A stretch of DNA of 64,000 nt, taken from contig NW_005434638.1 of assembly GCF_000315625.1 (NCBI RefSeq), positions 334,440 to 398,439 on the forward strand, read 5' to 3'. Numbering within the stretch: the stretch's first letter is position 1; each line of letters opens with the position of its first letter. Under the pieces are notes generated by a model. It was given only the letters and a program-made list of their open reading frames with translations, made no database searches and was not told where the DNA came from. The stretch comes from Guillardia theta CCMP2712. Lineage: Eukaryota; Protista; Cryptophyta. Below, piece by piece: positions 7,776 to 47,297 of this stretch. The translations under genes were made by a program, and so were the position numbers.

Positions 7776-10700
7776 ATGGCTCCCAACTTTCATCCAGACG
7801 AGAGGTCTTATCAGTTCGCCAAGTGGACGACGGAAGAATGCCTTGAAGTCGGCATTGACTGGACAGACCCAGAGTCCCTGATCAACAAGAGGTCAATCCC
7901 AGTTACCTACTTCCTTGAGTACCCCGTGATCCCCAACATCAACCTCAAGAAACAAGCGGAGGATGAAGGAGTAGAGGGCTGCTGCGTCGACTACGACATC
8001 GAAGGCAGCGGGGTATGGGTACCTTGCCTGGTGCTCTCGGCGGCCAAGCTGTTCACTGTCATAGTTGCGGGATACAACCATCCCACTCAAGTGCCTCGTC
8101 ATCGCGTCCTCCTGCTCGACGAGAATCCTCGACTCTTTGCCAGAAGTCTGCACAAGGCGCTGAGGGAGCGGGAGCGAGCGGAGACGTTCTTGCGATACAA
8201 CATCTACGCCGAGAATATGCCGACGTCAGACCTGCCTCCGATGGTGTGAACTTTCTCTGTCTCTCTGTCTCTCTCGCCCCTGCTGCCTCTCTCCCAGCCC
8301 ACAAAGTCCCTCCCTCCCTCCCTCCCTCCCTCCCTCCCTCCCTCCCTCCCTCCTCTTCTGTCTGAAAGCCCCCTCCTAAAACTTATATGCTCTGTCAGAC
8401 GCCATGGGAAATCTCCCGCATCACCAGCTCCGCGCTGAACTCAAAGACGCTTGCAAAGTTTGGAGAAGGAGGTAAGGGCAAGAGGCAGCTGTTCGTACAT
8501 AATCACCTGCGTCCCTAACTTCCCCGGCAGGGATGACAAGCATGCTGCTGGACGAGGTCAGGACTGATCATGAGCTGACTCTAAATCAGATCGTCCTCAA
8601 GTCCGTCCTGCAAGACAAGAAGGACCAGAAGGATTTCTCCCTCCTCGACCTGACCTGCCTGGACATCAACACGCCCAAGGCACCGGCCCCGCAGACTGGA
8701 ACCATCGTGGTGGAGCCGTACAGCTTCGCAAACGCGTTGAGAGAGTTCCAGGAGAAGACCCTGCTCTCGTTCAAGGAGGTCGTGCACGCCCTGTGCAACG
8801 TGCGATCGGAGTGCAGCAAGGTGTTGGAGCTGCAGCTGCTGGTCACTGAGTTCAAGTCCAGCGTTAGCCTCACCGAGTTCAAGCGCATCCAGACCGACAC
8901 GGTCAAGTATGTCGTGCAGACCCTCAAGCGGAACTGGATCGACGGGATCCGCATCGGCATCTCGACGCAGCTGGACGGGCTCAAGAACGAGCTGGACCTG
9001 GAGGTCAACGACAAGAAGAAGTTCGAAGAGAGCCCCCTCCCCATCCTTCTGCGCCAGGTGAGCGAAGCCTGCTGGAATCGTGCTTGGGTAGACTGACGTT
9101 GTGAGCAGGTGAGGTATGTCATGGAGCAGAGCCTTCGAGTGCTGGTGGAAGAGAGCGCCTCTGCCTACACCAAGTTCCTCTCGGATCTGACGGACATGGA
9201 CGTGCAAGTACTGTCCACCGACTCCGTGACCATCAGGCACAACCAGCAGGAAGAGCACCTGCGGGAGAGAGACCCGTTCTTCCTCGTCGAGCTCAAGTTC
9301 GAGGACGGGATGTTCGTCTACACCACCAGCCCAGCTGACTTTGAGCGAGAGCCAGTCGATCTCTTCATCGAAGCCCTTGTTGCAGTCTCCGACATCCCCC
9401 GCGCCGACTCCTACGTCCTCAAGAAGCTCTTCCTTGGTCGACTCATGTGTCTCTACTCGATCGGGCCCGAGGAAGACCAGATGGTGAGGAGGATCGAGCT
9501 GATGAGGGAGCAGCTGCACAAGGTCTGCAGTCCCCTCACTGAGTACCTCCGGCTGTACGACGAGTACCTCGAGTTCCTCAACATGGACCTGAGCGAGTAC
9601 GTTCGCTCGCACGAGGAGAAGGGTTTGTCGCTGCAGGAGGACAAGGACGAGGTCAGACGACTCAATGACGAGAAGGCTCGGATTACAGAGAGCATCCCTC
9701 CCTCCATCAGGATCGGTATCTTCCAGGTGGACTGTCAGAACGTCAAGCAGCAGCTGCAGACCAAGTTCGACCTGCTCGTCAGAATGATTCTTTCCCTCAT
9801 TGCGCAGAAGGTAAACCAATCATCCCAGTGTTACTCTCTCTTCCTCCTCCTCCTCCTCCTCCTCCTCTCTCTTCCTCCCGAAAACTCTTTTCTCCCATTG
9901 TCTTCCTCTTCGTCTCATGACTGTAAACGTTCTTCTTGCACTGACTTGTGCGGTGGAGGCGTCGGAGCTGAGCAAGAACATCGGCTCCAAGTTCACTGAC
10001 ATCCACAAGAAGTTGCTCCTGCATCCGGAGAGCGTCGAGCAGATCGTTGAGATGGAGGAGTACATCAAAGAGATCCCTAAAAAGACGGCAGAGATCCACA
10101 TGGTTCTAGTCGACATGCTCTCACAGTTCGAAGTCCTCGAGAACTTCTCCTTCCAGCTCAGTGACGAGCAGTTCAGCGACAAGTGGTCGGCGTACGCCTG
10201 GCCAAAGACGCTGGAGCAGACGATCGGCGACGCCAGCCAGAAGATGGAGGAGAAGAGAGATGCGTTCAAGAACGAGCAGATCGCTGAGCAGGAGGCGTTC
10301 GTGGACAAGCTCGACCAGATGGAGGCGATCATCGAGACCTACCACCAACACAACTCCCTCAGTAACATCGATACCATCGCCCCTGACGTCCGGGCCAAGG
10401 CGCAGACTCTCAAGGAGTACACGGAGTTGTCCAAGGTCTTCAATCAGCGAGAAGTCCTCTTCGGCCTCGAGCCGACCAACTACGAGCGGGTGCACAGGAT
10501 GGGCAAACAGTTCGAGCCCTACACGCAGCTGTGGATCTCAACGGACGACTGGAGGACGTGGAAGCAGTCGTGGCTGGTGGACGACTTCACCTCCCTGCAG
10601 CCCGAGACCATGGACCAGGAGATCCAGGAGACCTGGAGAAACCTGCTCAAGGCCAGCAAGGCTCTTGCCGACTACCCCGAGTGTCAGAATATCGCTGACG

Positions 10701-13700
10701 AGATCCGGGCTGACATCGACGAGTTCAAGCCGCTCATGCCCGTCATCGCCTCCCTGCGCAACCCCGGGCTCAAGGATCGTCACTGGGAGCAGATGTCAGC
10801 AGAGCTGGGATTCGAGCTGAAGCTGGGAAAGACGCTGAAGAACCTGCAGGACGTGATCGCCCTCGACCTGCATGCCCAGCAGGAGAAGATCGTCAAGATC
10901 TGCGAGACGGCGGCCAAGGAGTACTCGATCGAGGCGGCGCTCAACAAGATGCAGAACGAGTGGGAGCATGTGGAGTTCGAGATCATGCCGTACCGCGAGA
11001 CCGGCTCCTTCGTGCTCAAGGGGTCGGACGATATCCAGCAGATGCTTGATGACAACATCGTCATGGCGCAGGCCATGAGCTTCTCCCCCTTCAAGAAGCC
11101 TCACGCCGAGAGGCTCGAAGCCTGGGCCCAGAAGCTCAACATGATGTCGGAGATTCTAGAGCAGTGGCTCAACTGCCAGAGGTCCGCTATTTGCTCTTCC
11201 TCCTTCTTCCTCCTTCCTCCTTCCTCCTTCCTCCTTCCTCCTTCCTCCTTCCTCCTTCCTCCTCTGACAGAGCTTGACCTCTGGTGGCAGGAATTGGATG
11301 TACCTAGAGCCAATCTTCAGCTCTGACGACATCATGAAGCAGCTGCCGTCGGAGGGTCAGAAGTTCAAGGCCTGCGACCGGCAGTGGAGAAAGTACATGA
11401 AGATGGCAGCCGATGACCCCAACGCCCTTCGCTTCACCGACACGCCTGACCTCCTCGGGATTTTCATGCAGGCCTACCTCACGCTCGAGCAGGTACAGAA
11501 GGGTCTGTCGGACTACCTCGAGACCAAAAGGCAGGCGTTCGCTCGCTTCTACTTCCTCAGCAATGAGGAGCTGCTCGAGATCCTGTCACAGACTAAAGAC
11601 CCGCGGGCAGTCCAGCCACACCTGCGCAAGTGCTTCGAGGCCGTGGACCGAGTCACGTTCGAGGAGGACCTGGCCATGACGTCCATGTGGTCGGGGGAGG
11701 GAGAGAACGTCGTGTGGGACGGGAAGGTGTACCCTGAGGGGAACGTGGAGTTCTGGCTGACCGACGTCGAGAGGATGATGCGCATGTCCATCAACACGCA
11801 GGTAGGATACTCGGTGGAGGACTATGCCAAGGAGAGCCGCCCGGTGTGGGTCCTCAAGTGGCCGGGCCAGATCATCCTGGCGTGCGACCAGATCTACTGG
11901 ACGAGGGAGACGGAGGAGGCGATCAAGAAGCTACAGCTGAAGGAGTACCACGAGCAGTGCCATCAGCAGCTCCTGGACGTGACGAAGCTCGTCAGGACTG
12001 ATCTGAGCAAGATGCAGAGGGTCTCCCTCGGCGCCCTCGTGACCCTCGATGTCCATGGCAGAGACGTCGTGGAGAACCTGCACAAGGTTGGCGTCCAGTC
12101 CACCAGAGACTTCGAGTGGTCCGCCCAGCTGAGGTACTACTGGGAGAAGAGCTCGGAGGGATTCAGCGGCGACTTTGGGAGCTTCGTGGTGCAGGTGGAG
12201 AACAGGTTCCGCTACGGCTGCGAGTACCTGGGGAACAGCATGAGGCTCGTCGTCACTCCCCTCACCGACAGGATCTACCTCACCCTTACCGGGGCCCTCG
12301 GCATGGCACTCGGCGGGGCTCCGGCAGGGCCAGCAGGGACCGGGAAGACGGAGACGACCAAGGACCTCGCCAAGGCGCTGGCGAAGCAGTGCATCGTGTT
12401 CAACTGCCAGGAGGGGATGGACTACATCATGGTGGGGAAGTTCTTCAAGGGGCTGGCCATGTCCGGGGCATGGGCCTGCTTCGACGAGTTCAACAGGATC
12501 AACATCGAAGTGCTCTCCGTCATCGCCCAGCAGCTGCTCACCATCAACCAGGCCATCGTCAACAAGCTGGAGCGGTTCGTGTTCGAGGGGGTGGAGATCT
12601 CGCTGAACCCGGAGAACGCTTCCTTCATCACCATGAACCCGGGCTACGCGGGGAGGACCGAGCTGCCCGACAACCTCAAGGTTCTCTTCCGCCCAGTCGC
12701 CTGCATGGTCCCCAACTACGCTCTCATCGGGGAGATCCGCCTCTTCTCCTTCGGCTTCCAGGACCCGAGGAACCTGGCGGAGAAGATGGTGAATTGCTTC
12801 AAGCTCTCTTCAGAGCAGCTCTCCTCCCAGGACCACTATGACTTCGGCATGCGAGCAGTCAACACTGTCATCTCCGCCGCCGGGCTCAACAAACGCAGCC
12901 AGCCGGACGCAGACGAGGGCATCCTTATGCTCCGCGCGCTCAAGGACTCGAACCTGCCCAAGTTCCTGACGGACGATATCGTGCTCTTCAGCGGTATCAT
13001 CTCGGATCTCTTCCCCGGCGTGAAGCTGCCGGATCCCGACTACGGCTCGTTGATGGAGCAGATGAAGTTGACTACAGCTGAGATGGGCCTGCAGTGTGTT
13101 CCTAACTTCATGACCAAGGCAATCCAGTTCTACGACGTCACCGTCCTCCGCCACGGACTCATGACTGTCGGGCCCACCGGAGGAGGAAAGACTTGCTGCA
13201 AGAACATGCTGGCCAAGGCACTGACGATGCTCAAGAAGAATCAGGACGAGTACTACGAGGTCAGGCAGCTGATCATGAACCCCAAGTCCATCACCATGGG
13301 TCAGCTCTACGGCAGCTTCGACGAGGCTACTCACGAGTGGTCGGACGGCATCCTATGCAAGCTCTTCAGGGAGGCCGTCTACGACACCAGCGAGAAGCAG
13401 AAGTGGGTTGTCTTCGACGGGCCGGTTGACGCGCTCTGGATCGAGTCGATGAACACCGTGCTCGACGAGAACAAGAAGCTGTGCCTGGTCAGCGGGGAGA
13501 TCATCACCATGACGTCATGGATGAGGATGGTGTTCGAGGTCGAGGACCTCTCCGTAGCCTCCCCCGCTACCGTCAGCCGCGTCGGCATCATCTACGTTGA
13601 GCCCAGCTCGTCCGTCGGCACTGCCGCCATGGTGACCTCCTGGCTCCAGACCCTCCCCGAGGCCGTCAGGCCGATGGAGAAGCAGCTCAAGACCCTGTTC

Positions 13701-16700
13701 GACCAGATGCTGGACGAGGCGCTGGACTTCCATCGAAGGAACCTGAGCAGCTTCGTCAAGACGGTCGAGCCCAACCTGTGGCGTTCGGTGCTCAACGTGC
13801 TCGACGGCTTCCTCAAGGAGTACAACGTGATGGAGGGGCAGGCGGTGGACCCTGAGAGGCTGGAAGCTCTCAAGACCAACATCGAGCCGATCTTCCTCTT
13901 CTCCATCATCTGGGGCATCGGAGGGGCCCTGGACGCGCCGAGCAAGCTCAAGTTTGACCAGTGGATGAGGGGAAAGAAGAACTTCCCAGCCAAGAAGACC
14001 GTCTTCGACTACGCCTACGACACCCAGCAGTGCAAGTGGAAGGGATGGATGGAGACTATTGAGCAGGCTCCCATAGACCCCAGGAAGTCCTTCTCCGAGC
14101 TCATCGTTCAGACCCCCGAGTCCGTCAGCTACGCGTTCATGATCGAGCACATCTGCTCTCAGATGAAGCACGTCCTCTGCATCGGCCCCACGGGCACCGG
14201 CAAGACGCTGGTGGTAAAGCAGAAGCTGATGAAGGGGATGGACCCTTCGGTCTACAGCCCCATCTTCGTCACCTTCTCCGCTCAGACCACCGCCAACCAG
14301 ACGCAGGACATCTTGGACGGCAAGTTTGACAAGCGGAGGAAGGGAGTGTTCGGCCCTCCCGCAGGGAAGAAGTTCACCATCTTTGTCGACGATACCAACA
14401 TGCCTCTGAGGGAGCAGTACTTCGCCCAGCCCCCCATCGAGCTCCTGCGGCAGTGGATGGACCATGGCGGCTGGTATGACAGGAAGACTCATCAGTTCTG
14501 CCAGATCATCGACGTCATGTTCGTAGGAGCCATGGGTCCCCCGGGAGGCGGGCGCCAACCCGTGACCAACAGGTTCCTCAGGCACTTCAACCATGTTTCC
14601 TTCCCCGACATGAACGACGACAGTTTGCGTCTTATCTTCCGAACCATCTTTGCTGCCCACCTGGAGACCTTCTTTCCGCCCAAAATGAAGGCCCTCCTGG
14701 ACCCGATCTGCGAGGCTTCGCTCGACCTCTACAACAACTGCCTCAAGTCGCTGCTGCCCACCCCCGCCAAGTCGCACTACACCTTCAACCTGAGGGACCT
14801 GGCCAAGATTTTTCAGGGGATCATGATGGCAGATAGCAAGAAGATCGGGGAGGACGAGGGGATGGTTATCCGCCTTTGGGTCCATGAGTGCACTCGTATC
14901 CTCAGGGATCGCCTGACCGACACCCCGGACAGAGAATGGTTCGACGACCTCGTCGTTGACTTGGTCAGCCTCTCCTGCTCCGCCCCCTCCTCCCCCCTTT
15001 CTATCTAAATTCTCCTCCTTCCTCATCATTGCTTTCTTTCTCCTCCCCTCCTCCTCCATCCCCCCACCCACCACCACCTCCTCCTCCTCCTCCTGTCTCC
15101 ACCCCAGTTCCTCTTGCTCGTCCTCTTGCTCTTCTCCTCCCTCCCCCGCATCTAGATTCTCTTTCTACATCTCCCTCTCCCTCCACCATTGCTCCATTCT
15201 TCGGAGATCTTCTACTTGCCGTCCTCTCCTCTCCTCTACTTGTCGTGTCTCGTCGGTCTCTGCTCACCGTCTCCTTCCACAGGTCAAGACGACATTCACA
15301 AAAGATTGGTCGAAAATCAGAGTATGCGAGCGCTGCATCTGGGGTGAGACGACTTTGTCCTATCCTATCCTGTCCTGTCCTGTCCTGTCCTGTCCTGTCC
15401 TGTCCTGTCCTGTCCTGTCCTGTCCTGTCCTGTCCTGTCCTGTCCTGTCCTGTCCTTGTTGCTTTGCCCTCCCCTGCTTATTTCCGTCTCCTCTCCATTG
15501 CTTGCGTCTGCTCACTTCTTCCCTGCAGGAGACTACATGGTTCCTGGAGCTGATCCAAGGATGTACGTCGAAGTTCAGGACCTCGCGCTGCTGAGGAGAA
15601 CGATGGAAGGATATCTGGAAGAGTTCAACGTGTTGACCAACAAGCCCATGAAGCTGGTGAGAAGGATGGGAACTTGACTGAAATTATTCTCTCCTCTTCC
15701 GGGAATTTGACGGAAAAATTATCTCTATCTCAGTCGTATTTCATCATCATCATCATCATCATCTCCTCCTCCTCCTCCTCCTCCTCCTCCTCCTCCTCCT
15801 CCTCCTCCTTCTATTACTCCCTCTACACCTCCTCGTCTCTCGCACATGTTGTCTTTAGCTCTCTTCCTCACATAAGTACAGGTTCTCTTTCTCGATGCCA
15901 TCGAGCACGTGTCAAGGATCTCAAGGATTCTTCGTCAGCCTCGCAGCAACGCTCTGCTGTTGGGAGTGGGAGGAAGCGGCAGGCAGAGCTTAACTGTAAG
16001 AGAGGATCATGACGACGATACTCTTGCCCTTGCCCTTGCCCTTGCCCTTGCCCTTGCCCTTGCCCTTGCCCTTGCCCTTGCCCTTGCCCTTGCCCTTGCC
16101 CTTGCCCTTGCCCTTGCCCTTGCCCTCGCTCTCGCTCTCGCTCTCGCTCTCGCTCTCGCTCTCGCTCTCGCTCTCGCTGGTTCTCACGGTGTTCTCCAGC
16201 GAGTCGCAGCCTTCTGCGCGAGCATGGACTGCACTCAGATCGAGATCGCCAAGGGCTACGGGAAGAACGAGTGGAGGGAGGACATCAAGAAGATTTTGCT
16301 AAGGGCTGGAAAGGACGGAAAGCCAACGGTCTTCCTCTTCACAGACACTCAGATAGTGATGGAATCATTCTTAGAGGTACCTCTTGCTCCTCCTCCTCCT
16401 CCTCCTCCTCCTCCTCCTCCTCCTCCTCTGTTCCTCTCCTCCTCCTTGACCCCCTAGTCCTTCCTCTCCTCCTCTCCTCCTCCTCCCTTCTACATCCCTC
16501 CTCGCCTGTTCTCATCCCTCCCTCAGGACCTCAACAACATCCTCAACTCAGGAGAAGTCCCCAACATCTTCGACATGGCGGATCAGGATCAGATCATGAT
16601 GTCCATCCGATCCATCTGCCAGGCCGAAGGCATTCCCCTCACGAAGCAGAACATGTACGAAAGGTTCTTAGTCCGCATACAGGCCAACCTCCACCTCGTC

Positions 16701-19700
16701 CTCGCCTTCTCGCCCGTCGGCAACTCCTTCAGGAACAGACTGCGGCAGTTCCCCAGCCTCGTCACCTGCTGCACCATCGACTGGTTCACCGAGTGGCCGG
16801 CGGAGGCGCTGCGGGGAGTCGCGAGCGAATCGTTTGCGGAGATCGAGTTCCCGTCGCAGGAGGTCAAGGATGGGATCATATCCATCTGCCGGGACATTCA
16901 CCAGGGGGTCGAGGAGGCGTCGCATCGATACGCGGAGGAGATGAGGAGATACAACTATGTTACTCCCAGCTCCTACCTGGAGCTCCTGACCACCTTCAAG
17001 AAGGTGCTGAAGGAGAAGAGGGAGGAGATCGGGACGGCGAAGAGGAGGCTCTCGGTCGGGCTGGACAAGTTGATATCGACGGAGAAGGACGTCGAGACGA
17101 TGAAGCAGGACCTGATTGAGCTCCGTCCCATCCTGGAGAAGACGACGCAGGAAACCGAAGAGCTCATGGTCACGATCGAGAAGGACAAGATCAGTGCTGC
17201 GGAGACCAAGGCCGTGGTGGAGGTGGAGGAGGCAGCGGCTGCCAAGAAAGCGGCCGAGTGCAAGGAGATCAAAGACTCGGCTGAGGCCGGGCTGGCGGAG
17301 GCTCTGCCAGCCCTCGACGAGGCGGTGGCGGTCCTGAAGAACCTGAAGCTCTCGGACATCAGCGAGGTCGCCAAGTACTCGAACCCTCCCGCCCTCGTCA
17401 AGCTCGTCCTCGAGTCCCTCTGCATTATGTTCCAGATCGCTCCTGCCAAGGTCGGAGAGGCAGGCAAGAAGGTCGACGACTACTGGCCTCCTGGCAAGAA
17501 GCTGCTGGGAGACGCCAAGGGCCTTCTGGACAGCATGTTTGACTACGACAAGGATCACATACCGGACAAGGTGATTAAGAGAATCGAGCCGTTCATGGTC
17601 AACCCGGACTTCGAGCCCAACAAGATCTCCAGCGTCTCCAAGGCCTGCACTGCCATGTGCCAGTGGACCCGCGCCATGTACACCTACCACGAGGTTGCGC
17701 TGCAGGTGGAACCCAAAAGAATCGCGCTGGCCAAAGCGGAGGAGGAGCTGAAGATCGTAGAGGGGAAGCTACACGTGCTGCAGGCACAGCTGAAGGAGGT
17801 GATGGACCGCCTGGCCCACCTGGACGAGAAGTTCCAGGAGTCGATGCACAAGAAGGAGGAGCTAGCAAACAAGGCGGAGGACTGCCGGGTCAAGATGGAC
17901 AGAGCAGATCGCCTGCTCGGGGGCCTCGGGGGGGAGAAGGTTCGCTGGTCGGAGACTGTGGTGAAGTTTTCCCACATGATGGACAACGTCATCGGGGACG
18001 TGGTGGTGGCTGCCGGGGGCATCGCGTACCTGGGCGCGTTCGTTGCCTCGTACAGGGAGGAGCAGGAGAAGTTCTGGTCGGAAAAGCTCAAGGAGTACGG
18101 CATCCAGCTGACAGCAGGAGCCGGAGTGCGCAGCACGCTCGCCGATCCCGTGCAGATCCGAGCATGGAACATCAGCGGGCTGCCGACCGACGTGTCGTCC
18201 ATCGAGAACGCCATCATCCTCAGCAAGTCTCGCCGCTGGTCGCTGATGATCGACCCGCAAGGGCAGGCGAACAAGTGGATCAAGAACATGCAGAAGGGCA
18301 AGGGCCTGGAGGTCATCAAGCTCTCCGAGAAGGAGTTCCTCCGCACCCTCACCAACGCCGTGCGCTTTGGCAAACCCGTGCTGCTGGAGAATGTCGGGGA
18401 GGAGCTGGATCCCTCCCTGGAGCCCATCCTGGCGAAGCAGATCTTCATGCTCGGGGGTGTGGAGATGATCAAGATAGGAGATGAGACGCTGGAGTACAAC
18501 CCGGACTTTTCCTTCTTCATCACCAGCAAGCTCCCCAACCCTCACTACTCCCCTGAGACCTGCGTCAAGGTCACCCTCCTCAACTTCACCGTCAACCAGT
18601 CCGGGCTCGAGGATCAGATTCTCGGCATCGTGGTGGGGAAGGAGCGCCCCGACCTTCAGGAAGCGAAGAACCAGCTCGTGATCTCCATGGCGGAGATGCG
18701 GAAGACGCAGAAGGAGCTGGAGGACAAGATCCTAAAGCTGCTCGCGGAGTCTGAGGGCGACATCCTAGCAGACGAGAACCTGATCGTGATCCTGGGGGAG
18801 GCCAAGGTGACATCAGACGAGATCGCAGTGAAGGTGGCGGAGGCGGAGAAGACTGAGAAGGAGATCGACGAGACGAGGGGCAAGTACCGGCCGACGGCCT
18901 TCCGAGGCTCCATCCTCTTCTTCTGTGTGGCGGATCTTGCGGCGGTTGACTCCATGTACCAGTACTCCCTCCAGTGGTTCCTCCAGCTGTTCGAGTCCGG
19001 CCTTGAGAACTCCCCGCCAGCAGAGGAGATTGCTGAGAGGTGCAGGAACGTCAACGAGTTCTTCACCTTCTCACTCTACAAGAACATCTGCCGCGGGCTG
19101 TTCGAGAAGGACAAGCTCCTCTTCTCCTTCATCCTCTGCATGAAGATCATGCAAGGCGACAACCGCATCGACGCCGCCGAGCTGAGGTTCTTGCTGGCAG
19201 GGGCCACCAGCAACGAGCCGCACATCGCGAACCCAGCCAAGGAGTGGCTGGTGGACAGCTCCTGGAACGACATCTCAGGCTTGTCAAAGTTGTCAAAGTT
19301 CCCGGAGTTTGACGTTGAGTTCTCGTCCCGGGTGTCCGAGTGGAAGGCTTTCTTCGACTCCAACACGTGCTATAAGGACCCTCTCCCCGGCCAGTGGGAC
19401 TCCTCCCTCTCCACCTTCCAGAAGCTCCTCGTGCTCCGTTGCCTGAGGCAGGACAAGATACAGGACGCCATCATGGGGTTCGTCACGGAAGAGATGGGAG
19501 AGAAGGTAAGGCTTGCTGCTTCTTCTTCCTCGCGCTGACTTGCTTCCGCCCTCCTCCAGTTCATTGAGCCTCCTCCCTTCAACCTTCCCCTCGCCTTCGA
19601 CGACTCTCTTTCCACCGTCCCGTTGATCTTCATCCTCTCCACAGGGGCAGACCCGACCATGGCGCTCCTCTCTTTCGCACAGAGCAAGGGCTTTAGCGAG

Positions 19701-21404
19701 CGCCTCGAGTCGATCTCCCTGGGACAGGGCCAGGGCCCCATAGCCGAGAAGAAGCTCGCGGCCTCGACCAAGAGCGGCTCCTGGCTCCTCCTACAGAACT
19801 GCCACCTGGCGGTCAGCTGGATGCCGAGGATGGAAGCGATAGTCGACGGCTTTGACCCCAACTCTCTGCACCCTGACTTCCGGCTCTGGCTCACTGCCAT
19901 GCCCTCCCCCCAGTTCCCCGTGGCTGTGCTTCAGAACGCGGTCAAGATGACGTTGGAGCCGCCCAAGGGGCTCAAGGCGAACATGATGGGCTCGTTTCAG
20001 AACTTCAGCGACGAGTTCTTCGAATCCTGCCAGAAGCCGGACGTGTTCAAGAAGCTCGTCTTCTCCCTCTGCTGGTTCCATGCTGTGATGCAGGAGCGCA
20101 GGAAGTTCGGACCCCTCGGCTGGAACATCTCCTACGACTTCTCCAACTCGGACCGAGACATCTGCCTCGGCCAGCTCCAGATCTTCCTCGACAAGTACGA
20201 GGAGATCCCCTTCAAGGTCATCTTTCAGCTCTCCGGCGACGTCAACTACGGCGGCAGGGTGACCGACGACTGGGACCGCAGGACCATGAACACGCTCCTC
20301 GCCGGCTACATCTGCCCAGCTGCCCTCCAGGACGGCTACCAGTTCTCAGCTGACCCCAGCTACTGCCAACCCCAGGCCTCCTCCTTTTCCGACTACCTCG
20401 AGTGTCTCCAGTCCTGGCCCCTCCAACCGAGCCCGGAGGCCTTCGGCCTGCACGAGAACGCCGACATCACTTGCGCGCAGAACGAGGTCCGAGCGCTCTT
20501 CGAGAACGTCCTCGCGCTGCAGCCCAGGGTCTCCTCGGGGAGTGGGATGAGCAGGGACGAGACGATAGACATGATCGCTGAGAACATGCTGAACAAGCTC
20601 CCCAGCCCCTGGCTGCTGCTCGACGTGCAGAAGCAGTACCCGGTCATGTACGAGGAGTCGATGAACACGGTGCTACAGCAGGAGTGCATACGCTACAACA
20701 ACCTGCTGGTGACCATGAAGGCGACGCTCTCCGACGTCAGGAAGGCGCTCAAGGGCCTCGTGGTGATGTCTGCCGAGCTCGACGCGCTGGCTACCTCCCT
20801 GTTCAACAACCAGGTCCCTGGCGCATGGGAGTCGAAGGCGTACCCGAGCATGAAGCCTCTCGCGCTCTGGCAGGAGGACCTTCACAAGCGATGTTCCTTC
20901 ATCCAGCTGTGGATCGACGAGGGGATCCCCGTCACCTTCTGGATCAGCGGCTTCTTCTTCCCCCAGGCCTTTCTGACGGCCATCTTGCAGAACTTTGCGA
21001 GGAAGCAGCAGATCGGTATCGACACCATCAGCCTGGACTTCGTCAACCAGACGGTGGAGCACACCAGCATCTCCACGAAGCCTGAGAACGGCGCCGTCGT
21101 GTGGGGACTCTTCCTGGAGGGATGCAGGTGGGACATCTCTCAGAACAGTCTCATCGAGTCTAGACCAAAGGAGCTTTTCACCAGCTACGTTCCCATCCTC
21201 CTCCTGCCCATCCAGCATCGTCCGAAGCCGAATCCTGCGACGACGCTCATGTGCCCCTGCTACAAGATCCTGACGAGGAAAGGCGTCCTGTCAACCACCG
21301 GGCACTCGACAAACTTCGTGACGACCATCGAGGTCCCTACCAACACAGCACCCGAGCACTGGGTGAAGAGAGGAGTCGCATTGTTCCTTGCTCTTGCTTA
21401 CTAG
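7776..21404 (+). CDS. DNAH1: Axonemal inner-arm dynein heavy chain, DNAH1-like (multi-exon)
   Basis: P-loops GPAGTGKT, GPTGGGKT, GPTGTGKT and GVGGSGRQ, plus CFDEFNRI and HYDFGMR. Stalk and MTBD are present and the C-terminus ends HWVKRGVAL. The N-terminal PRHRVLLLDENPRLF...YNIYAENMP segment is typical of the DNAH1 subfamily, but the subfamily call is less certain than the dynein call. Confidence 0.92.
15367..15455 (+). repeat. (CCTGT)n pentanucleotide microsatellite in dynein intron
   Basis: Perfect tandem tgtcc repeats are directly visible. Confidence 0.95.
16022..16177 (+). repeat. Compound hexamer microsatellite, (CTTGCC)n switching to (CTCGCT)n, in dynein intron 15996-16199
   Basis: Directly visible; both units read Leu-Ala in the same frame. 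Confidence 0.95.
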
Positions 21405-35936: not shown

Positions 35937-38138
35937 TCATTCGTCAAGTGTCTCCATGTAGGGTGAGAAGTAAGATCTGCAAGTTCAAGTAAGCTGAGAG
36001 CGAACGGGCAACTCACGCACGTTTGGCTGAGAAGCGAACGGACGGGGCCGAGGCCAGCGATGAGGACAGGGAAGAAAACGCCGATAGCCTGTGAAGAAGT
36101 GAGTGGGGGGAGAGGAGGAGGACGAGAGAAAATTGGGTGGAGGTTGGAACGGAAGGGAAAGAGGGTGGAGAAGGCGGGGATGGGTTGCAGAAAGTGGGAT
36201 CGGGGGAGGAGAAGGGGGAGGGGGGAGGGGAGGAAAGTAAAGTGGAGGGGGAGGGGGGAGGGGAGGAGAGGGGAGGGGNNNNNNNNNNNNNNNNNNNNNN
36301 NNNNNNNNNNNNNNNNNNNNNNNNNNNNNNNNNNNNNNNNNNNNNNNNNNNNNNNNNNNNNNNNNNNNNNNNNNNNNNTGAGAACAAAATCCCATTCATG
36401 AAGGCACCTGTAAACACCACACCGGAAAATAATCCGTTAAAATCTGTAGGGAGTAGGAAATCGAGGGGAGGGGGAGGAAGACAGGATAACAACCGATTCC
36501 TTCACGAGGAACATGCTGGCAAGGCAAGCCATCTGGATGAGAGTGAAGGAAGACAACTAGGGGGGAAACGTCAGAGAGCTCCCGTCACCCGAGCACGAAC
36601 TCACCACTGTGCTGGGGATCAGCTTGTCCTTCCATAGGAACTTGTTGTCGTTCACCCTCTCAGAGATGAGCAGCTTCATTCGCTCCCACATGTCAACCCC
36701 GCCCAGCGAGGAGGCGCCGAGGTACATGAAGAGGCCTGCAGACGGTGAGAGGGCGACCATGGCGGAGGCCTTCGCTACCTGTCATGACGCACTTGGGGAC
36801 TGTTGCCAGGGTAGGACGGAGGAAGAGGATGGAGAGAGCGATGAGGAGGTGGATAAGAAAGCCAGTGACCCTCTGCTCCAGCACTCCTTGCACGTTGGTC
36901 GTTCCGCTCTGGTAGACGGTGTTGGCCCGCACGTGCGCCAACGAACGGACGGTGGCAGCGACGAGCCAAGGGAACCCGATGACGGAGCAGCCTCCTGTGA
37001 GGAGAGCGATGATGAGCAGGTCGAGGTCGTAGCCGTGCCCCTTCTTTAGCTTGTGCTTGTCCGAGTTGACGAGCCTGACCGTGATGTTCTGATCCATAAA
37101 GAGCAGGATGGTCGCCATGAACGCGGGGACGGCGGACGCGAATCGGGCCCAGAGAGGAAGTTCCATCAAGTCGATGAGCCATGGACGTCCGCTGGTGGTG
37201 GAAAGAGCAGCAGGAACATCGAGGCCGCTCAAGCTGATACCGAAGTTGGACTTGAACTGCATGCCGATAAACCATGCAAGCGCAACGCCGATGGTGGGAG
37301 CGAAGTTGGAAATCGTGTCACGTAGAGACTTGTTGAAGAATTTGGTGGCGCGGAGCTTGGAGAGGGAGGTAGCAGTGAGGAAGGCGGAGGAGGCGAGGAT
37401 CAAGCTCGAGCTTGCGATGTTGAATGCAGCGGGAGTCCGAGCGACGGCAAAGAGCTTCCAAGACTCCTTGACGGCCTCGAAGATGAAGATGAAGGAGATG
37501 AGAAGCGAGAAGATCTCGTCCGTGAACCGCGTGAGCCGGGCGACCACGTTTGAGAAGGAGAAGAAACTTCCCATGAGGAGGAACAAGCTACTCCACAACC
37601 CCGTCCAGGCGTAGAGGGGAAGGAAGGGAAGGCCCATGCTGAGCGAGAACTGATAGAGGACGGCAGTGAAGGCAAGGACAGGCCCCGTGCTCCCGATGAT
37701 AGTCAGAGGCTGCCCAGAGAAAGCTGCGTAGACCATCCCGCAGATCCCCGTGCTCATCAGGTACTCGACGGTACCGATGTTTCCTCCTGTCATGCCGGAC
37801 ATGAGCCCTCCAAACGCCAAGGCAGGGGCGAGACACGCAAAGAAGAGGAAGGCGACGGTCGAGAGCGTCTGCAGCTTCAGCCCGTCCTTGATGTCGCTCC
37901 AGTACAACTTGGACCTCGAGCTCACGTCCTCCCGTAGCCCCTCCCCGAACCCTCTCACTAGAGGCGGAGGAGGAACGTGCGATGCCCGCAAAGCAGCAGC
38001 TCCCGATGCGGATTTTTCTCCTCGAGGAGGCCTCAAGATCAAGAGAGGATGCGAGAGCTGCGAGAGGATCGGAAGACTGATGCTGCCATCAATCAGCAGC
38101 ACAACTGCGAGAAGACGGAGAGCGAACTTCGCCGCCAT
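35937..38138 (-). CDS. SLC4-family (HCO3-/anion) transporter with N-terminal targeting-like leader; last introns span the assembly gap
   Basis: FLFFACLAPALAFGG, FSGQPLTIIGSTGP, TRFTDEIFSLLISFIFI, ILLFMDQNIT...HKLKKGHGYDLDL, PWLVAATVRSLAHV, EQRVTG, GLFMYLG, FTLIQMACL...KES / AIGVFFP. Intron at 36736-36778; stop TGA at 35937. Confidence 0.92.
36279..36378. other. Assembly gap (100 N) inside an SLC4 intron
   Basis: Run of 100 N flanked by a G-rich low-complexity tract. Confidence 0.99.
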
Positions 38139-39085
38139 GCCTGATGAGATCTCAGTCAAACTCTCAGATCATCTTGTTAATACACAACTCTCCAACTCTC
38201 CGGCCTCTTTCTTCCCGCTTCTCAACTCGCTATCATTTCGCTAGCCACGAAATTCTCTGATTCCTCTACTCCAACGGCGATACTCCTCCACTTTCCCTCT
38301 CGCTCTCCTCTCTCCCTCTCTCTCCCTCCCTCTCCATCTCTCTCCCCCTCTCTCCATGTTTCATCTTCACAACCATCAAATTCAACCATTCGATCCATGC
38401 CCGAGTGCATCCCCCTCCCCTTGGATATGAATCTTTCTATTCCTCCACTTACCGTTTCCTCGCCCAACCCCTCTTCCAATCCTCTTCCCTCCTCTCTCCT
38501 TGACCCTTTCCGTCACTCTTTCCCTCTTTGCCCCCTTCTCCCTCTCTTATTCTGCTCTCAGCTCACTGAGTTTCTCCACTTCTCCTCCTCCTCCTCTCTT
38601 CATCGCTCCACAAACTTCCGTCCCCTCCCTGCATTTTTCATTTTCGCGTCACTTTTCTTATTATTTGTTTTAGTGCATTATTTCAAATAATATTTTCAAA
38701 TTTTATTGTTTAAATTGAAAATACATGATAGCAGTTGAACTTGAAACCTTGTGTAAAAAGCGAAATATAAAAAAAGAACAATTTCGTTCCGACCCATCCG
38801 GGCCGCACGGGAGAGGCTCCCCGAAAGATCCGATCATGATCGGCGGCCCGGGACAACCGTGACGCCATGGCCGGACTCCGGCAAGTCACTGACCGTCGGA
38901 CTTTTTAACTTAACTTCGAGTAAAGACTGGCTTCGGTGGAATCGGGCAGGTCCGGCCGCATGATTTTCAACTTTCGGGGGCAGGAGCCAGAGTTTGCTGT
39001 CAGCTTGTCTACCGGGAACGAACCGTATTGTAGCGTTTCAATCGGAACAAATCTCTCAGCTCAGTAAAGCAGTTCAACGGTTCAT

Positions 39086-41461
39086 TCAGGCAGCAGAACT
39101 TTCCTCATCTTCTACCGGGAACGAACCGTATTGTTGGTTCCACTCTATGTAGTTAGAGATGTCCTTGTCAGAAACGCTGGCTCGGACCTGAAGAGAGAAA
39201 TGATCAGCTGGACTAGTAAAAATACAAGGGGACACCTGTCTCAAAGCGTTCTTGAAATCTTGAATGTTGATCGGACGAACGCTTTGATTGAACTCGGGTC
39301 AGCTTTCTCCAGCTTAATCCACGGAAGTCAGATTACCTTTGAGCACTAATCCTCCGTATATCTGCAAGCCCTCGAATGGGACCCATCTGCAGACAGTGAG
39401 CTACATCGCATGCCACACCAAACGCCTTGACCGCAGCTTCGGTGCAGAGAGCCTTGACATCTGCTCCTGAATAGCCCTTGGTCAAGTTTGCAATTTCTTG
39501 GAGGTCCTGAAAGAAAAATTCTTCAAAGAGTGTTTGACCAAACAGCAATGGTGCACACCATTTCACAAAGGTCATGACTTTGATTCCTCATGAGATGTGT
39601 GACCAACTGTTGACGAGCTGCCGAGTCCGGGAGGGGGATGTACAGACGTTTCACCATCCTACGTCTTGCAGCCTCATCAAGTTCCTGCAGATTGAGGCGA
39701 AGCATCAGGTCGGACAACCGTTTCGCCTGAGAGTTGGTATACTTGTGGACGATTCGTGGCGCCAACGAGCAAGATCCTTTCCTCTTGAGAACAGGCAACG
39801 CCGTCCATTTGTACCAGAAACTCTGTCTTGACTCGTCTCGAAGCTTCGAAGTCTCCTTCTGATCGTTGTGACAGCAAGGAGTCGATTTCATCTATGAAGA
39901 TCACCGAAGGAGCCTGTTGATATTCGAAAATGTATGTAAATCAATCGCAATTCAGCAAATTCAATGTTTACATTGACACGCGCAACAGCAAATAGGGCCC
40001 TAACCATTTTCTCTCCCTCCCCTGCAATTTGGGTCAAATAAAGATACTTTCGTGAAAGCTCATCACCTATCCATTTTGACATGAGTGAACTAGCAGAGAT
40101 TGAGAAAAATGTTGCCCCTGACTCCGTAGCAATCGTCTTTCCAATCATGGTTTTCCCCGTTCCTGGAGGCCCAAACAGAAGCAACCCTTTGGGTGGCCCT
40201 CGCAGACCAGTAAAGATGTCTGGGCGAAGCATGGGCCAAACAACAATCTCCATCACACTTGCCTTAGCAAATTCGAGTCCAGCTATATCATCCCAACTTA
40301 TTCCAGGACTCTGATCCAATATCTCACTCTCGATCATTTCGATCATTTTCGGTTCAATGTTTTTGAGTCGAGGATCCGTGGGCTCAGAATCTGCTCTTTG
40401 AGGGTTCGAGTCACGTTGTCTTGATTCTTGATTCATGCCCCCCTCGTCACCATCTTCTTTTTTCATCCAGGGTGGTACAAAGGCGTTGTTCAGGTTCGAC
40501 CGTTTTCCGCCTAAAGTCTTTCTTTGACCTGCATTTGCTATATGCCAACCAGATGTATTTCCTCCTTGCATCTCGGAGCGATCATTCCTGTCAAACACTT
40601 TAATTGATCATCACAAGCAGTCTCCCTTGTTCACCTTTGCCCGTTTGCTTTGTCTAGCCTATACTTGTCAGATCCTGACATGAAATCGTTCGGTCTGTTC
40701 TGAGAATTTTCGTCTCGACCAGAGTTGGCAGTATGCTCTTCTTGTCTCCAACCTGCCACTGGACCCATGGCTCCATTGTTCCACCTTAAAGCAATAATGA
40801 GGGAAAATACAACCTATCTCATCAGCACGTCTCACCTGGAAGCAATGCTGTTCTCACATCTTCCTGAAACCTCGATTATTTTGCGCTTTCTCATCTCCTC
40901 CGATTGTTTCCACGGATTTGCTTCATTGTCCTGCAAAAGATTCTCCTTCATGTTGAGCCCCTGCGGTGGAGGAGCAATTTCCAACGAATTTCTTGCGGTC
41001 CCACCAACTATAGCGTTGAGTTCTTGGAAACGTCGGCAGGCTGCATGAGAGAAAGTAATCGAGTTGTCGATTTCCATTCTTTCAGCCTTCTTCATGCTCT
41101 TTTTCATCTCTTGAAATGCAGGCAGAGACCAAATCTCGTCGAAATCGAAGGAAAAGCTCTCCTGATCATGCTGCAACTGCGGGCCGCAAGCATGCACCAC
41201 CTGCATCACATCATCGTCGGAGACGTAGGCTCTCATCGCCCTCTGGAGCCTCGACGAAACATCTTCTCTCACTGTAAACGAAGTATGCAGAAGGTCCTTG
41301 CAGTCCACTGTCCTGTCCAATTCCATCCAGAATGGATCTTCGAGCATCAGCGAGCACTTCTGAAGGTTCTTCACTTTCATGGCAGGGTTCAAAGAATCGG
41401 TCAACGACAGCATTGCATCTGCAAATAGCCGACTCTTCATCGTCTCTGGCCTTGCCTGCAT
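39086..41461 (-). CDS. FIGNL1: Fidgetin-like 1 AAA ATPase (multi-exon)
   Basis: [88 protein letters not shown] and C-terminal [11 protein letters not shown]. Confidence 0.92.
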
Positions 41462-45006: not shown

Positions 45007-45779
45007 GTGCATTGCAGCACATCTATTCATTCTATTCATGCTTCGCCTCTTCTGAAAGAATCATCACAATCCCTCTTGCCAATTCCACATTTCTACTTTC
45101 GTGGTAGTCATCTTAGGTATGAAGTTTTCATTCAGATGCCTGCTGCTTGTTAGTTGGCTTATCCACTGTTTCCATTCTTCTGATTGTTACAACCAAACGT
45201 ATCTCACACCGTCCCATGGCCATTCCATCACCTTGTCGCTGATGTCTCGACCTGTGCTGAATCACCAGCCTCCTGCTGATGTTGAGCTGGACAATTCTTC
45301 AGGATTACCAGACCCGTGAAGAAACAGCAGAACCTGGTTCGTTCCTCCCATGAACTCCTTTGCCATCCTCTTGAAGATATTTTATCTGCATGAGTCGTCC
45401 CTCTGTCTCGATTGATGAGAGCAATACATCAGGTTTGTTGAAGCCTCCGAATGATCGTCGTCCCGGTCATTATCGAATCAGAGCTCTTCGGTCTCAAGCA
45501 AGTGACAACGTCCCTCGTGCTTGCTGTGCATGCGAAGCTCCAACATGTAACACCGCGCTTTTATCGAGAGTTCTAGAGTCCCTGGGAAAGCGTTCAAATA
45601 GAACCTGAACTAAATGCAATGTGGCTTACTGAATATCTGACATGAACCTTTCAAGGTCGAACATTTGATAGAGAGTATGTGTGACGTCAAATTTTACTTT
45701 TTCTTGAGGAAATCCTACAAGAATGGATATGACTCGGGAGAAATTCTTTAGGACATCAATCTAAGGCGTCTGTTGCCTT

Positions 45780-47297
45780 TTACATGTGCAAGTTGAGAAT
45801 AGAAACAGCGATGGCCATCACAAAGCTTCCAGCTGCGTACGTCAGCTGCACTCCAGCTGAGAAGGTTTCATGGCTCTCTTCTCCGCCTCCACAAGCTGCC
45901 TCCAACGCTTCCATCGGAGTCATGCCAATCACGACGCCAGCGGTTGGCTTCCCGGTCACTGTGAAACTTCTTCCAGTAGACAAGACCGAGTCGTCCTTTA
46001 TGTCTATCTCTGTGATCTTGGACTGATCAGGGTCGAGCAAGTACATCTTATGGTAGCCCAATACAAGCTGATACTTGCTCGTAGACGTGAAAGGCTCCAC
46101 CACCTTGAGCGAAGCCAGCTCTTTCCAGCTGGAGCTCACGTCGTACAGCTTCACCTCACCGCTCGTGTAGAACGCGACGAATACTTTGCCGCTCACCATT
46201 TCGAATCCATAAGAGACAGGAATGACACCTGCTGGGACCGCCATGACGTCATTGACTGTGTAACTCTTGTCGCCCCCTCTCCAGCGGACAAAGCTTCTAG
46301 AGCCGTCTTTGTTGTAGACTCCTACAAGAACAGCCTGGTTATCATGACCGACGAAGGTGCCGATGGATCCTCCAGCTTCATGATACTTTACATTGAAAGA
46401 CTCGATCGCGTCGTTGCTGTATTTTACCGCCAGGAAGTAGCTGTTTTGGAGGTTGATGCCCCCTCGTCCATTTCCGCAGCCGATCGCGTGCCATCCTCCC
46501 ATTCCCATCGCATGACCATGATAGCCCGGACAGTCTCTGGGAGTGTTCCATGCGACGTCAACGTTTCCGGACGCTGTCTTCTTCACTGCCTTGAATTGAC
46601 TGGAAAGCGAGTCGCACGACGTGTGAGGTGTCGCACAGGCGCTGCTGTTGAACGCTGGGTTGGGTAGAGAGACGAGGAAGACATCTTGCGCCAAAGGCAC
46701 AGCAATGCCATGCTGAGGAGCCATCCAGGTGGAGTCAAACTCGATCCTGCTGTCCAAGGTCTTCTTGGTGGTGTCAGCTAGCATCGAGAGTCTGTCGTCA
46801 ATGGCGACAGCTCGAGACCTAACAGTCGGCTCGTTCTGGGGAGCTGACGTTCCATCGAAGAAGATGACCATACGGTTGTAACCACCAGAGAAGTGCGTGG
46901 GAAGTTTGCAGTCTGTACACTTCCCCTCAATACTGAACTTGGTCGGGTCGGACTTGCTGACGTCCGCATGGTCTCCATGTGACTCGAGCGAGAGACCTGA
47001 ATGGACGAGGAAGAACTCGTGGAGGGCCCTGAAGTTAACGACGACACTCTTATAGTCAGATGTTGGATAGATAGCTGCAGGGGTGGTCCCGATCCCGTCT
47101 ATCTCTTTCTCCACTTTTCCGTCGTCGAGGTCGAGGACTCGTACCATGGAGCTTCCCGTATCGGTGAAGACCATGCGTCCAGACGTACAAGAGCCATGTT
47201 CTTCATCATTAGCACCATGGCATTCTTGGGGCAAGCATGCCAGAGCAGCAAGGAGGACCAGAGGTAGGAGGGGGAGGGCGCTCAAGTGCATGGGCAT
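45780..47297 (-). CDS. Intronless secreted, probably GPI-anchored His-rich beta-propeller similar to the bacterial zinc metallochaperone AztD
   Basis: 505-aa single ORF with a signal peptide. Motifs VRVLDLDDG, SGLSLESHGDH, PTHF...IFFDG, HGIAVP, CPGYHG and IGC appear in the AztD order. The C-terminus is small residues followed by a hydrophobic tail. Confidence 0.75.
   Translation of the reverse strand: MPMHLSALPLLPLVLLAALACLPQECHGANDEEHGSCTSGRMVFTDTGSSMVRVLDLDDGKVEKEIDGIGTTPAAIYPTSDYKSVVVNFRALHEFFLVHSGLSLESHGDHADVSKSDPTKFSIEGKCTDCKLPTHFSGGYNRMVIFFDGTSAPQNEPTVRSRAVAIDDRLSMLADTTKKTLDSRIEFDSTWMAPQHGIAVPLAQDVFLVSLPNPAFNSSACATPHTSCDSLSSQFKAVKKTASGNVDVAWNTPRDCPGYHGHAMGMGGWHAIGCGNGRGGINLQNSYFLAVKYSNDAIESFNVKYHEAGGSIGTFVGHDNQAVLVGVYNKDGSRSFVRWRGGDKSYTVNDVMAVPAGVIPVSYGFEMVSGKVFVAFYTSGEVKLYDVSSSWKELASLKVVEPFTSTSKYQLVLGYHKMYLLDPDQSKITEIDIKDDSVLSTGRSFTVTGKPTAGVVIGMTPMEALEAACGGGEESHETFSAGVQLTYAAGSFVMAIAVSILNLHM

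Follow-up and report, generated by a model that had tools for sequence, protein, structure and literature searches.

We analyzed a gene on the reverse strand of a 64,000-nucleotide stretch of the cryptophyte Guillardia theta CCMP2712 (contig NW_005434638.1, positions 334,440 to 398,439; hereafter the window). The gene occupies window positions 45780-47297, and its product appears to represent a eukaryotic, membrane-anchored branch of the AztD family of zinc metallochaperones, which has so far been regarded as purely bacterial. The reading that we prefer, with a probability of about 55%, is that the protein would be a membrane-tethered metal binder of the AztD family, placed outside the cell at the plasma membrane, where it would capture zinc for ZIP permeases. 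An earlier annotation made from this DNA (the original prediction) had described an AztD-like propeller with a signal peptide and a C-terminal anchor signal, acquired horizontally from a bacterium.

Zinc in surface seawater is scarce enough to limit phytoplankton. To our knowledge, the molecular basis of inducible high-affinity zinc uptake in algae is largely unknown, and the only candidates are ZIP permeases, COG0523 proteins and ZCRP-B. If our reading is true, the protein would be a new component of algal zinc uptake and the first lead on an extracellular metallochaperone that feeds a eukaryotic ZIP; it would also define a new family, a possible marker of zinc stress, for which metatranscriptomes and metaproteomes from the ocean could be searched. 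Our literature searches, with most subscription journals outside their scope, found AztD treated as bacterial only; neither AztD-like proteins of eukaryotes nor the Diplonema fusion described below came up in them. This agrees with the suggestion in the original prediction that the protein is potentially undescribed.

Kinship with AztD and its zinc sites

A Pfam search with the 505-residue protein returned zero matches. The NCBIfam profile of AztD (NF038015) matched it with an E value of 1.2e-19 over profile positions 3-342 of 356; the score of 70.3 bits lies below the curated cutoff of 400 bits, which makes the protein, as judged by the profile, a relative within the AztD family and no AztD equivalog. 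With the same profile the algal relatives scored 72-91 bits and proteins of a Bosea-type bacterial group, which is described below, 135-138 bits. A sequence search of the PDB found AztD alone (6cmk, E = 1.7e-6), with the ligand motifs aligned.

The same relationship is evident on the level of the predicted fold. An AlphaFold2 model built with 17 relatives reached a predicted template modelling (TM) score of 0.78 and a mean predicted local distance difference test (pLDDT) value of 74. When this model was searched with Foldseek, ranks 1-9 were the nine AztD chains of 6cmk, 6n01 and 6ck1, with E values from 7e-25 to 3e-19 and TM scores of 0.79-0.83 by target; the next fold, generic propellers, followed from E = 1e-10. 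A feature search of the ESM Atlas yielded sub-threshold leads only. Together, the profile, the PDB search and the model make a solid case that the predicted protein is a genuine AztD-fold beta-propeller, with a kinship far beyond chance, and this part of the original prediction was borne out by all three approaches.

The crystal structures of AztD define two zinc sites. In the protein from Paracoccus denitrificans (PdAztD) site 1 is formed by H124, H167 and H218 in the pore of the propeller, while site 2, which is the zinc-transferring site, consists of H99, H102 and D104 on a hairpin together with the C-terminal H408 (Neupane et al. 2019, PMC6689063). The hairpin has the form H-G-x-H-x-D (H99, G100, H102, D104), and H408 is kept in 68% of the family (PMC6689063). 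The corresponding six ligands of the G. theta protein (H135/H196/H260 for site 1 and H107/H110/D112 for site 2), together with the cysteines C256 and C274, were the same in each of the 17 relatives gathered first, and 122-146 of the 146 AztD-like domains collected later retain them. Judged from these comparisons, both zinc sites of AztD are intact at the residue level. The histidine and cysteine motifs named in the original prediction are all present, namely SHGDH (residues 106-110), PTHF (133-136), HGIAVP (196-201), CPGYHGH (256-262) and GC (273-274).

AztD contains a conserved disulfide, and below its site 2 the N-terminal strand runs next to the C-terminal one (PMC6689063). A disulfide is likewise predicted for C256 and C274 of the G. 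theta protein. Two added cysteines, Cys37 and Cys469, could staple the N- and C-terminal strands together; we propose such a staple because these two strands adjoin each other under site 2 of AztD.

Predicted membrane anchoring, origin and candidate partners

The two most hydrophobic 15-residue windows of the protein are residues 8-22 (Kyte-Doolittle value 2.6) and 487-501 (2.0), and behind the C-terminal hydrophobic segment there are just two more residues. Judged by eye and from the hydropathy profile, the tail begins with S479-A-G; a spacer of 9 residues leads to a hydrophobic stretch that runs to residue 503 of 505. This fits the pattern of a glycosylphosphatidylinositol (GPI) signal, with small omega residues, a short spacer and a hydrophobic end; a tail-anchored helix is equally possible. 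GPI anchoring would be feasible because the G. theta genome encodes the transamidase components Gpi16/PIG-T (99.5 bits) and Gaa1 (160.6 bits). Neither a retention signal nor a transit-peptide-like extension after the signal peptide was found in the sequence and its hydropathy profile. We therefore propose that the protein would be secreted and tethered to a membrane, most likely by a GPI anchor and otherwise by a tail anchor. The signal peptide and the GPI-like tail of the original prediction, including its tail motif (SAGVQ...SIL at residues 479-500), are indeed present as patterns, while GPI anchoring itself, a location at the cell surface and the specificity for a particular metal are to be read as predictions.

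The relatives differ from the Bosea group in the same regions. A hydrophobic tail that reaches the C-terminus occurs in 21 of 48 algal relatives and in three or four of the eight members of the cryptophyte clade; in another 17 of the 48 a long stalk rich in Ser, Thr and Pro leads to a transmembrane helix, behind which 20-45 residues form a cytoplasmic tail. Neither layout was found in the 17 proteins of the Bosea group. Behind the signal peptide, the start motif C-[TS]-x-G-x-[LM] is present in 49 of 56 sequences of the eukaryotic clade, compared with 0/17 in the Bosea group. A crude pattern detected a cysteine about 10 residues past the last strand in 34/48 sequences of the algal clade and again in 0/17 of the Bosea group; many of these cysteines precede a stretch rich in His and Asp.

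Two variations on this theme were seen among the algal relatives. A subgroup of diatom proteins (P0036, P0057, P0076, P0078, P0081, P0087, P0093, P0104 and P0174-P0178) has a stalk of about 150 residues, a strong transmembrane helix and a cytoplasmic tail of 20-45 residues. Several of these tails begin with a juxtamembrane pattern like R-x-x-A-L; the layout recalls the diatom protein ISIP1 and may point to an endocytic role. In a 757-residue protein of the algal clade from a Logan assembly (P0041), the AztD-like propeller is followed by a Hint module, i.e. an autoprocessing module of the hedgehog/intein type (PF01079, E = 2.5e-20), which may provide a third way to release or lipid-anchor the propeller.

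Next we consider where the gene came from. A word search found three close relatives and a group of Bosea-like bacterial proteins, and an exhaustive profile search gave 575 matches at E <= 1e-3, with hundreds of bacterial relatives among them; the nearest bacterial proteins are 25-30% identical to the G. theta protein. Cluster look-ups revealed eukaryotic relatives in a second cryptophyte, Rhodomonas salina, in Symbiodinium natans, where the gene has an intron, and in the four pennate diatoms Epithemia, Nitzschia, Cylindrotheca and Amphora. The relatives from Rhodomonas, Symbiodinium and the diatoms are all annotated as hypothetical, and each carries a predicted anchor, either a GPI-like tail or a transmembrane helix. 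One diatom copy adjoins a copia-type retroelement on an 851-kb contig. A 666-residue neighbour of the diatom gene was considered as a paralogue and rejected.

Phylogenies were computed with FastTree and, for 77 domains, as a quick tree under a posterior mean site frequency (PMSF) mixture model; groupings were compared by approximately unbiased (AU) tests (LG+G4, 42 rows), for which the groups were named after the tree had been seen. Several members of the clade are environmental sequences, which were assigned to eukaryotes from their architecture and their named neighbours. In the PMSF tree the cryptophytes form a clade with a support of 99, as do the diatoms and the dinoflagellate (99), and the two clades are joined with a support of 93. 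This eukaryotic clade is sister to an alphaproteobacterial group of Bosea, Microvirga and Inquilinus (98) and is nested in bacterial diversity. The AU test did not reject a grouping of the cryptophytes with Bosea (p = 0.14); one transfer into algae is favoured over two.

The tree fits a bacterial origin of the eukaryotic AztD-like clade by a transfer that would be old and common to several algal lineages. The horizontal acquisition that had been proposed from the DNA alone is consistent with this tree as far as the bacterial source is concerned; a lone acquisition by Guillardia is not, given the presence of the family in Rhodomonas, Symbiodinium and pennate diatoms. Vertical inheritance across eukaryotes had been named as an observation that would speak against the proposal, and the existence of a eukaryotic family in cryptophytes, a dinoflagellate and diatoms goes part of the way in that direction.

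In bacteria, AztD works with an ABC (ATP-binding cassette) importer and its zinc-binding protein AztC. A six-frame search of the 87-Mb G. theta genome, in which very short exons could be missed, gave no match to PF01297, the family of ZnuA and AztC, although the same family was found in 11 of 14 genomes in a control search. The AztC/ZnuA-type partner that is typical of AztD is hence missing from what was found in G. theta, in agreement with the original claim that the protein acts without an ABC partner. The idea that it was stripped of this partner is misleading, however, because its nearest bacterial relatives already lack one. In 43 of the 78 loci of the Bosea-type group (L011-L088; for example L022:3706-6245), the direct neighbour of the AztD-like gene encodes a COG0523 GTPase and is transcribed either in the same direction or divergently, whereas ZnuA is near the gene in two of the 78; an amidohydrolase is nearby in 15. 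The authors of the AztD structures reported the same link to COG0523 for the Bosea-dominated "cluster 4" and suggested that this cluster may have new functions (PMC6689063). Three fusion proteins were also seen among more distant bacterial relatives: P0025 (1,216 residues) with two propellers and AztC/ZnuA, P0038 (756 residues) with one propeller and ZnuA, and P0046 (1,077 residues) with one propeller and ZinT. Here a single chain unites the chaperone with its client. Such fusions seem to tie the fold to zinc uptake in general.

A different arrangement was found in the diplonemid Diplonema papillatum. Its protein KAJ9458053.1 (P0023), named only "KE4-like" by NCBI, comprises 2,432 residues with a signal-like start, five AztD-like propellers and a complete ZIP permease, and is encoded by a stop-free reading frame of 7,299 nt on a 242-kb contig (JAPJBO010000297.1; L008:3001-10299). 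The ZIP domain matches PF02535 (E = 5e-52) and has the motifs HNxxDG and HExPxExxD. Four of the propellers are intact and site 1 is kept in 4/5; the fifth is devoid of any His ligand and has kept the cysteine pair. The N-termini of ZIP proteins face outward, which would make the propellers an ectodomain of this permease. We consider the fusion an independent recruitment, because the PMSF tree places its propellers within another bacterial clade (support 99) and because a single origin of all eukaryotic copies was rejected by the AU test (p-AU = 6.6e-7).

The G. theta genome contains 26 matches to the ZIP family and many COG0523 loci; the ZIP genes have multiple exons, and such genes were searched piece by piece. 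By analogy, ZIP permeases would be the most likely eukaryotic partner of the AztD-like protein. We propose this partner because of the Diplonema fusion, the missing match to a ZnuA-type protein in G. theta and the abundance of ZIP genes.

Gene model and neighbourhood

The gene is a single reading frame from ATG to stop; another stop codon lies in frame 14 codons before the ATG. A contig of 1,601 nt from the Joint Genome Institute (JGI; sample 3300017164) is 100% identical to the genome and strictly collinear with it from 11 nt past the ATG to 94 nt past the stop. We read this contig as a transcript because both of its ends hug the gene, as in a cDNA contig, and its collinearity across the coding sequence shows that the gene has no intron. 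The public protein model, which is also an ESM Atlas entry, has only 464 residues; it begins at Met42 and omits the signal peptide and the conserved Cys37 (window 47175-47297, reverse strand). The 505-residue reading is the better model, since Cys37, in its motif C-T-x-G-R-[LM], which nearly all eukaryotic relatives keep, is upstream of Met42 and the contig covers this region in frame; the start at Met42 is an artefact of a truncated contig. The positions of all features are listed in Table 1.

Table 1. Features of the AztD-like gene and its product, with positions in the window.
Feature	Position	Strand	Details
Complete single-exon coding sequence, AztD-like protein	45780..47297	-	505 codons and stop
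Match of JGI contig L001	45686..47286	-	100% identical, collinear; includes at least 94 nt of 3' untranslated region (45686-45779)
Signal-peptide-like N-terminus, residues 1-28	47214..47297	-	hydrophobic core 5-24; C-H-G before A29; cleavage site predicted from hydropathy
AztD-fold beta-propeller (predicted), residues 37-458	45924..47189	-	begins with the motif of the eukaryotic clade, C37-T-S-G-R-M
Site 2 hairpin, H107-G108-D109-H110-A111-D112	46962..46979	-	corresponds to PdAztD H99, H102, D104
His135, first ligand of site 1	46893..46895	-	PdAztD H124; 141/146 domains
His196, second ligand of site 1	46710..46712	-	PdAztD H167; 145/146 domains
His260, third ligand of site 1	46518..46520	-	PdAztD H218; 146/146 domains
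Cys256-Cys274, cysteine pair of the family	46476..46532	-	disulfide in AztD crystals; 144/146 and 143/146 domains
Linker, residues 459-478	45864..45923	-	Cys469 and His476, conserved in the clade; putative role
GPI-signal-like tail or tail anchor, residues 479-505	45783..45863	-	S-A-G, 9-residue spacer, hydrophobic tail

The gene is present as a single copy in the assembly (87,145,349 bases in 669 contigs), where it sits on a 655-kb scaffold. Its GC content is 53.6%, compared with 52-58% in the flanks. The original prediction considered it the only clearly intronless gene of the window. The contig confirms that this gene is unspliced; that it is the only such gene is plausible and was partly checked, in that the other long reading frames examined turned out to be exons, either of a single dynein heavy-chain gene or of a gene for a bicarbonate transporter. 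The dynein gene (window 9917-21404, forward strand) has few, very long exons, with reading frames of 469, 1,244, 987 and 593 residues that contain the domains DHC_N2, AAA_6 to AAA_9, MT and Dynein_C. The downstream neighbours are two exons on the reverse strand, a large one from an SLC4-type bicarbonate transporter (36693-38159; PF00955, E = 4e-117) and one from an AAA ATPase (39888-40598).

Proposed mechanism, alternatives and known systems

According to the reading that we prefer, the protein would be held at the outside of the plasma membrane by its GPI or tail anchor and would capture Zn2+ at nanomolar or lower concentrations by site 1, by site 2 or by both. The zinc would then be passed from the flexible and exposed hairpin of site 2, maybe with the help of H476, to ZIP permeases, so that no ABC binding protein would be involved. 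Alternatively, the protein could simply raise the local zinc concentration near the ZIP permeases.

Several observations weigh against this reading. Sites of the His3 type can also accept Co, Ni, Cu or Fe. The profile score is so far below the AztD cutoff that the function may have drifted, and the C-terminus of the AlphaFold2 model has pLDDT values below 50. The fourth ligand of site 2 is tentative: His476, the sole histidine of the linker behind the propeller and seven residues after Cys469, is a possible counterpart of PdAztD H408, and many algal relatives are His-rich in this place. In the genome of G. theta none of the ZIP or COG0523 loci adjoins the AztD-like gene, and the neighbouring reading frames (the bicarbonate transporter, the AAA ATPase and frames without an assigned family) include no zinc-linked gene. 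The fusion in Diplonema, whose propellers are from a different AztD subclade, shows that a propeller of the AztD type can couple to a ZIP, not that the algal clade does so. Finally, the role of site 1 is unexplained even in bacteria (PMC6689063).

Four other explanations were considered. At the cell surface, the protein could receive or bind a different metal (Fe, Co, Ni, Mn or Cu) or a complex of such a metal, in the manner of the iron-starvation proteins ISIP1 or ISIP2a, and have no part in zinc uptake; we regard this as rather unlikely. The combination of a signal peptide, a propeller and a membrane anchor does resemble the published layout of ISIP1, a resemblance that is closest in the diatom relatives with a transmembrane helix and a cytoplasmic tail, and His-rich sites are promiscuous for metals. 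However, the G. theta protein has no cytoplasmic tail and hence lacks the D/ExxxL endocytosis motif of ISIP1. ISIP1 is moreover reported to have no homologues in prokaryotes or cryptophytes, whereas the G. theta protein has hundreds of bacterial relatives, none of the relatives is named ISIP1, and all those that are characterized or linked by their context point to zinc.

A role inside the secretory system seems to us similarly improbable. In the endoplasmic reticulum (ER), the Golgi, the vacuole or the outer plastid compartment that is continuous with the ER, the protein could buffer zinc, or it could be a chaperone that supplies the metal to zinc enzymes which are secreted or reside in the lumen, and it would then play no part in zinc uptake from the medium. 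A signal peptide shows entry into the ER only, the ER of cryptophytes is continuous with the outer plastid membrane, and the KE4/ZIP7-type name of the Diplonema fusion refers to a ZIP of the ER and Golgi. AztD itself has been proposed to store zinc in the periplasm (PMC6689063). These arguments are opposed by the missing retention signal and transit-peptide-like extension, by the hydrophobic tail at the very C-terminus, which is typical of GPI signals and mostly leads to the cell surface, and by the long Ser/Thr/Pro-rich stalks before the transmembrane helix in many relatives, as they are found in surface proteins.

We give little credence to the view that the propeller has drifted to a role outside metal trafficking, as an enzyme or a binding scaffold in which the conserved histidines are catalytic or structural. 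It would be compatible with a score well below the equivalog cutoff, with the new functions suggested for the Bosea cluster and with the unexplained role of site 1 in AztD. It is difficult to reconcile with the fact that both metal sites, including the flexible transfer hairpin, are kept across a deep eukaryotic clade, that many relatives have added His/Asp-rich linkers, and that the nearest relatives among bacteria are linked to COG0523. For bacterial contamination, or for a very recent transfer confined to Guillardia, one could cite the lack of an intron and the fact that the best matches outside algae are bacterial. This explanation is effectively refuted by the position of the locus between spliced eukaryotic genes inside a long scaffold, its host-like GC content, the eukaryotic targeting signals, the orthologue in Rhodomonas, the relatives in Symbiodinium (with an intron) and diatoms, and an identity to any bacterium of no more than 25-30%.

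A membrane-tethered zinc binder at the cell surface continues to be our preferred reading. A wider and distinctly more tentative proposal is that AztD-like propellers may constitute an unrecognized class of zinc metallochaperones that work outside the cell in eukaryotes and supply ZIP permeases. They would have been recruited from bacteria at least twice, once in a lipid- or transmembrane-anchored form in cryptophytes, dinoflagellates and diatoms, and once as the ZIP-fused ectodomain of five propellers in diplonemids. If so, they would belong to the high-affinity zinc uptake of marine protists and be candidate markers of zinc stress.

Among the known systems, AztD of P. denitrificans and Citrobacter koseri (6ck1, 6cmk, 6n01) is the closest in structure. 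It shares with the G. theta protein the propeller fold, the His triad of site 1, the H-x-x-H-x-D hairpin of site 2, the cysteines of the disulfide and an extracytoplasmic location, which for G. theta is a prediction. The G. theta protein, on the other hand, is only about 20% identical to it, is eukaryotic, has a signal for membrane anchoring and an added N/C-terminal pair of cysteines, and is encoded in a genome without an aztABC operon or an AztC-type partner. The Bosea-type AztD proteins ("cluster 4" of Neupane et al. 2019, PMC6689063) share all ligands and have no adjacent ABC importer; they differ in being bacterial, soluble in the periplasm and paired with COG0523, and they end right after the propeller, without the C-T-x-G-x-L start, the cysteine behind the propeller or any anchor. 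The Diplonema protein KAJ9458053.1 also has a eukaryotic AztD-like ectodomain without an ABC partner, but it is a multi-domain protein from another AztD subclade with a covalent fusion to ZIP.

ISIP1 of diatoms (Lommer 2012, PMC3491386; Kazamia 2018, PMC5955625) is likewise an algal trace-metal candidate. It too has a signal peptide and a C-terminal anchor, and its ectodomain is predicted to be a beta-propeller. It differs in its transmembrane helix, its cysteine-rich centre, its role in the uptake of siderophore-bound iron, the absence of reported bacterial homologues and the cytoplasmic D/ExxxL endocytosis motif, which is located about 22 residues after the transmembrane helix (PMC5955625). 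An identity of the G. theta protein with ISIP1 was rejected on account of its architecture, in which only two residues follow the hydrophobic segment; it is by their layout that the two proteins are set apart.

The closest parallel in concept is ZCRP-B of diatoms, a homologue of NikA that is tethered at the surface and has been proposed to concentrate Zn and Co for ZIP transporters (Kellogg et al. 2022, PMC9010474). An identity with ZCRP-B was also rejected: a NikA/CntA-type fold is not indicated by any Pfam match, and the predicted fold is a propeller. ZCRP-B belongs to the unrelated NikA-type family of solute-binding proteins and has an N-terminal transmembrane anchor; its Zn/Co-responsive abundance and its surface location were shown by experiment, whereas a surface location of the G. 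theta protein is a prediction. What the two would have in common is a bacterial periplasmic metal binder tethered to the surface of an alga. If our reading is true, the AztD-like protein would be a second and unrelated example of this kind, and it would offer a testable component of zinc uptake with crystallographically defined sites and a natural fusion to ZIP.

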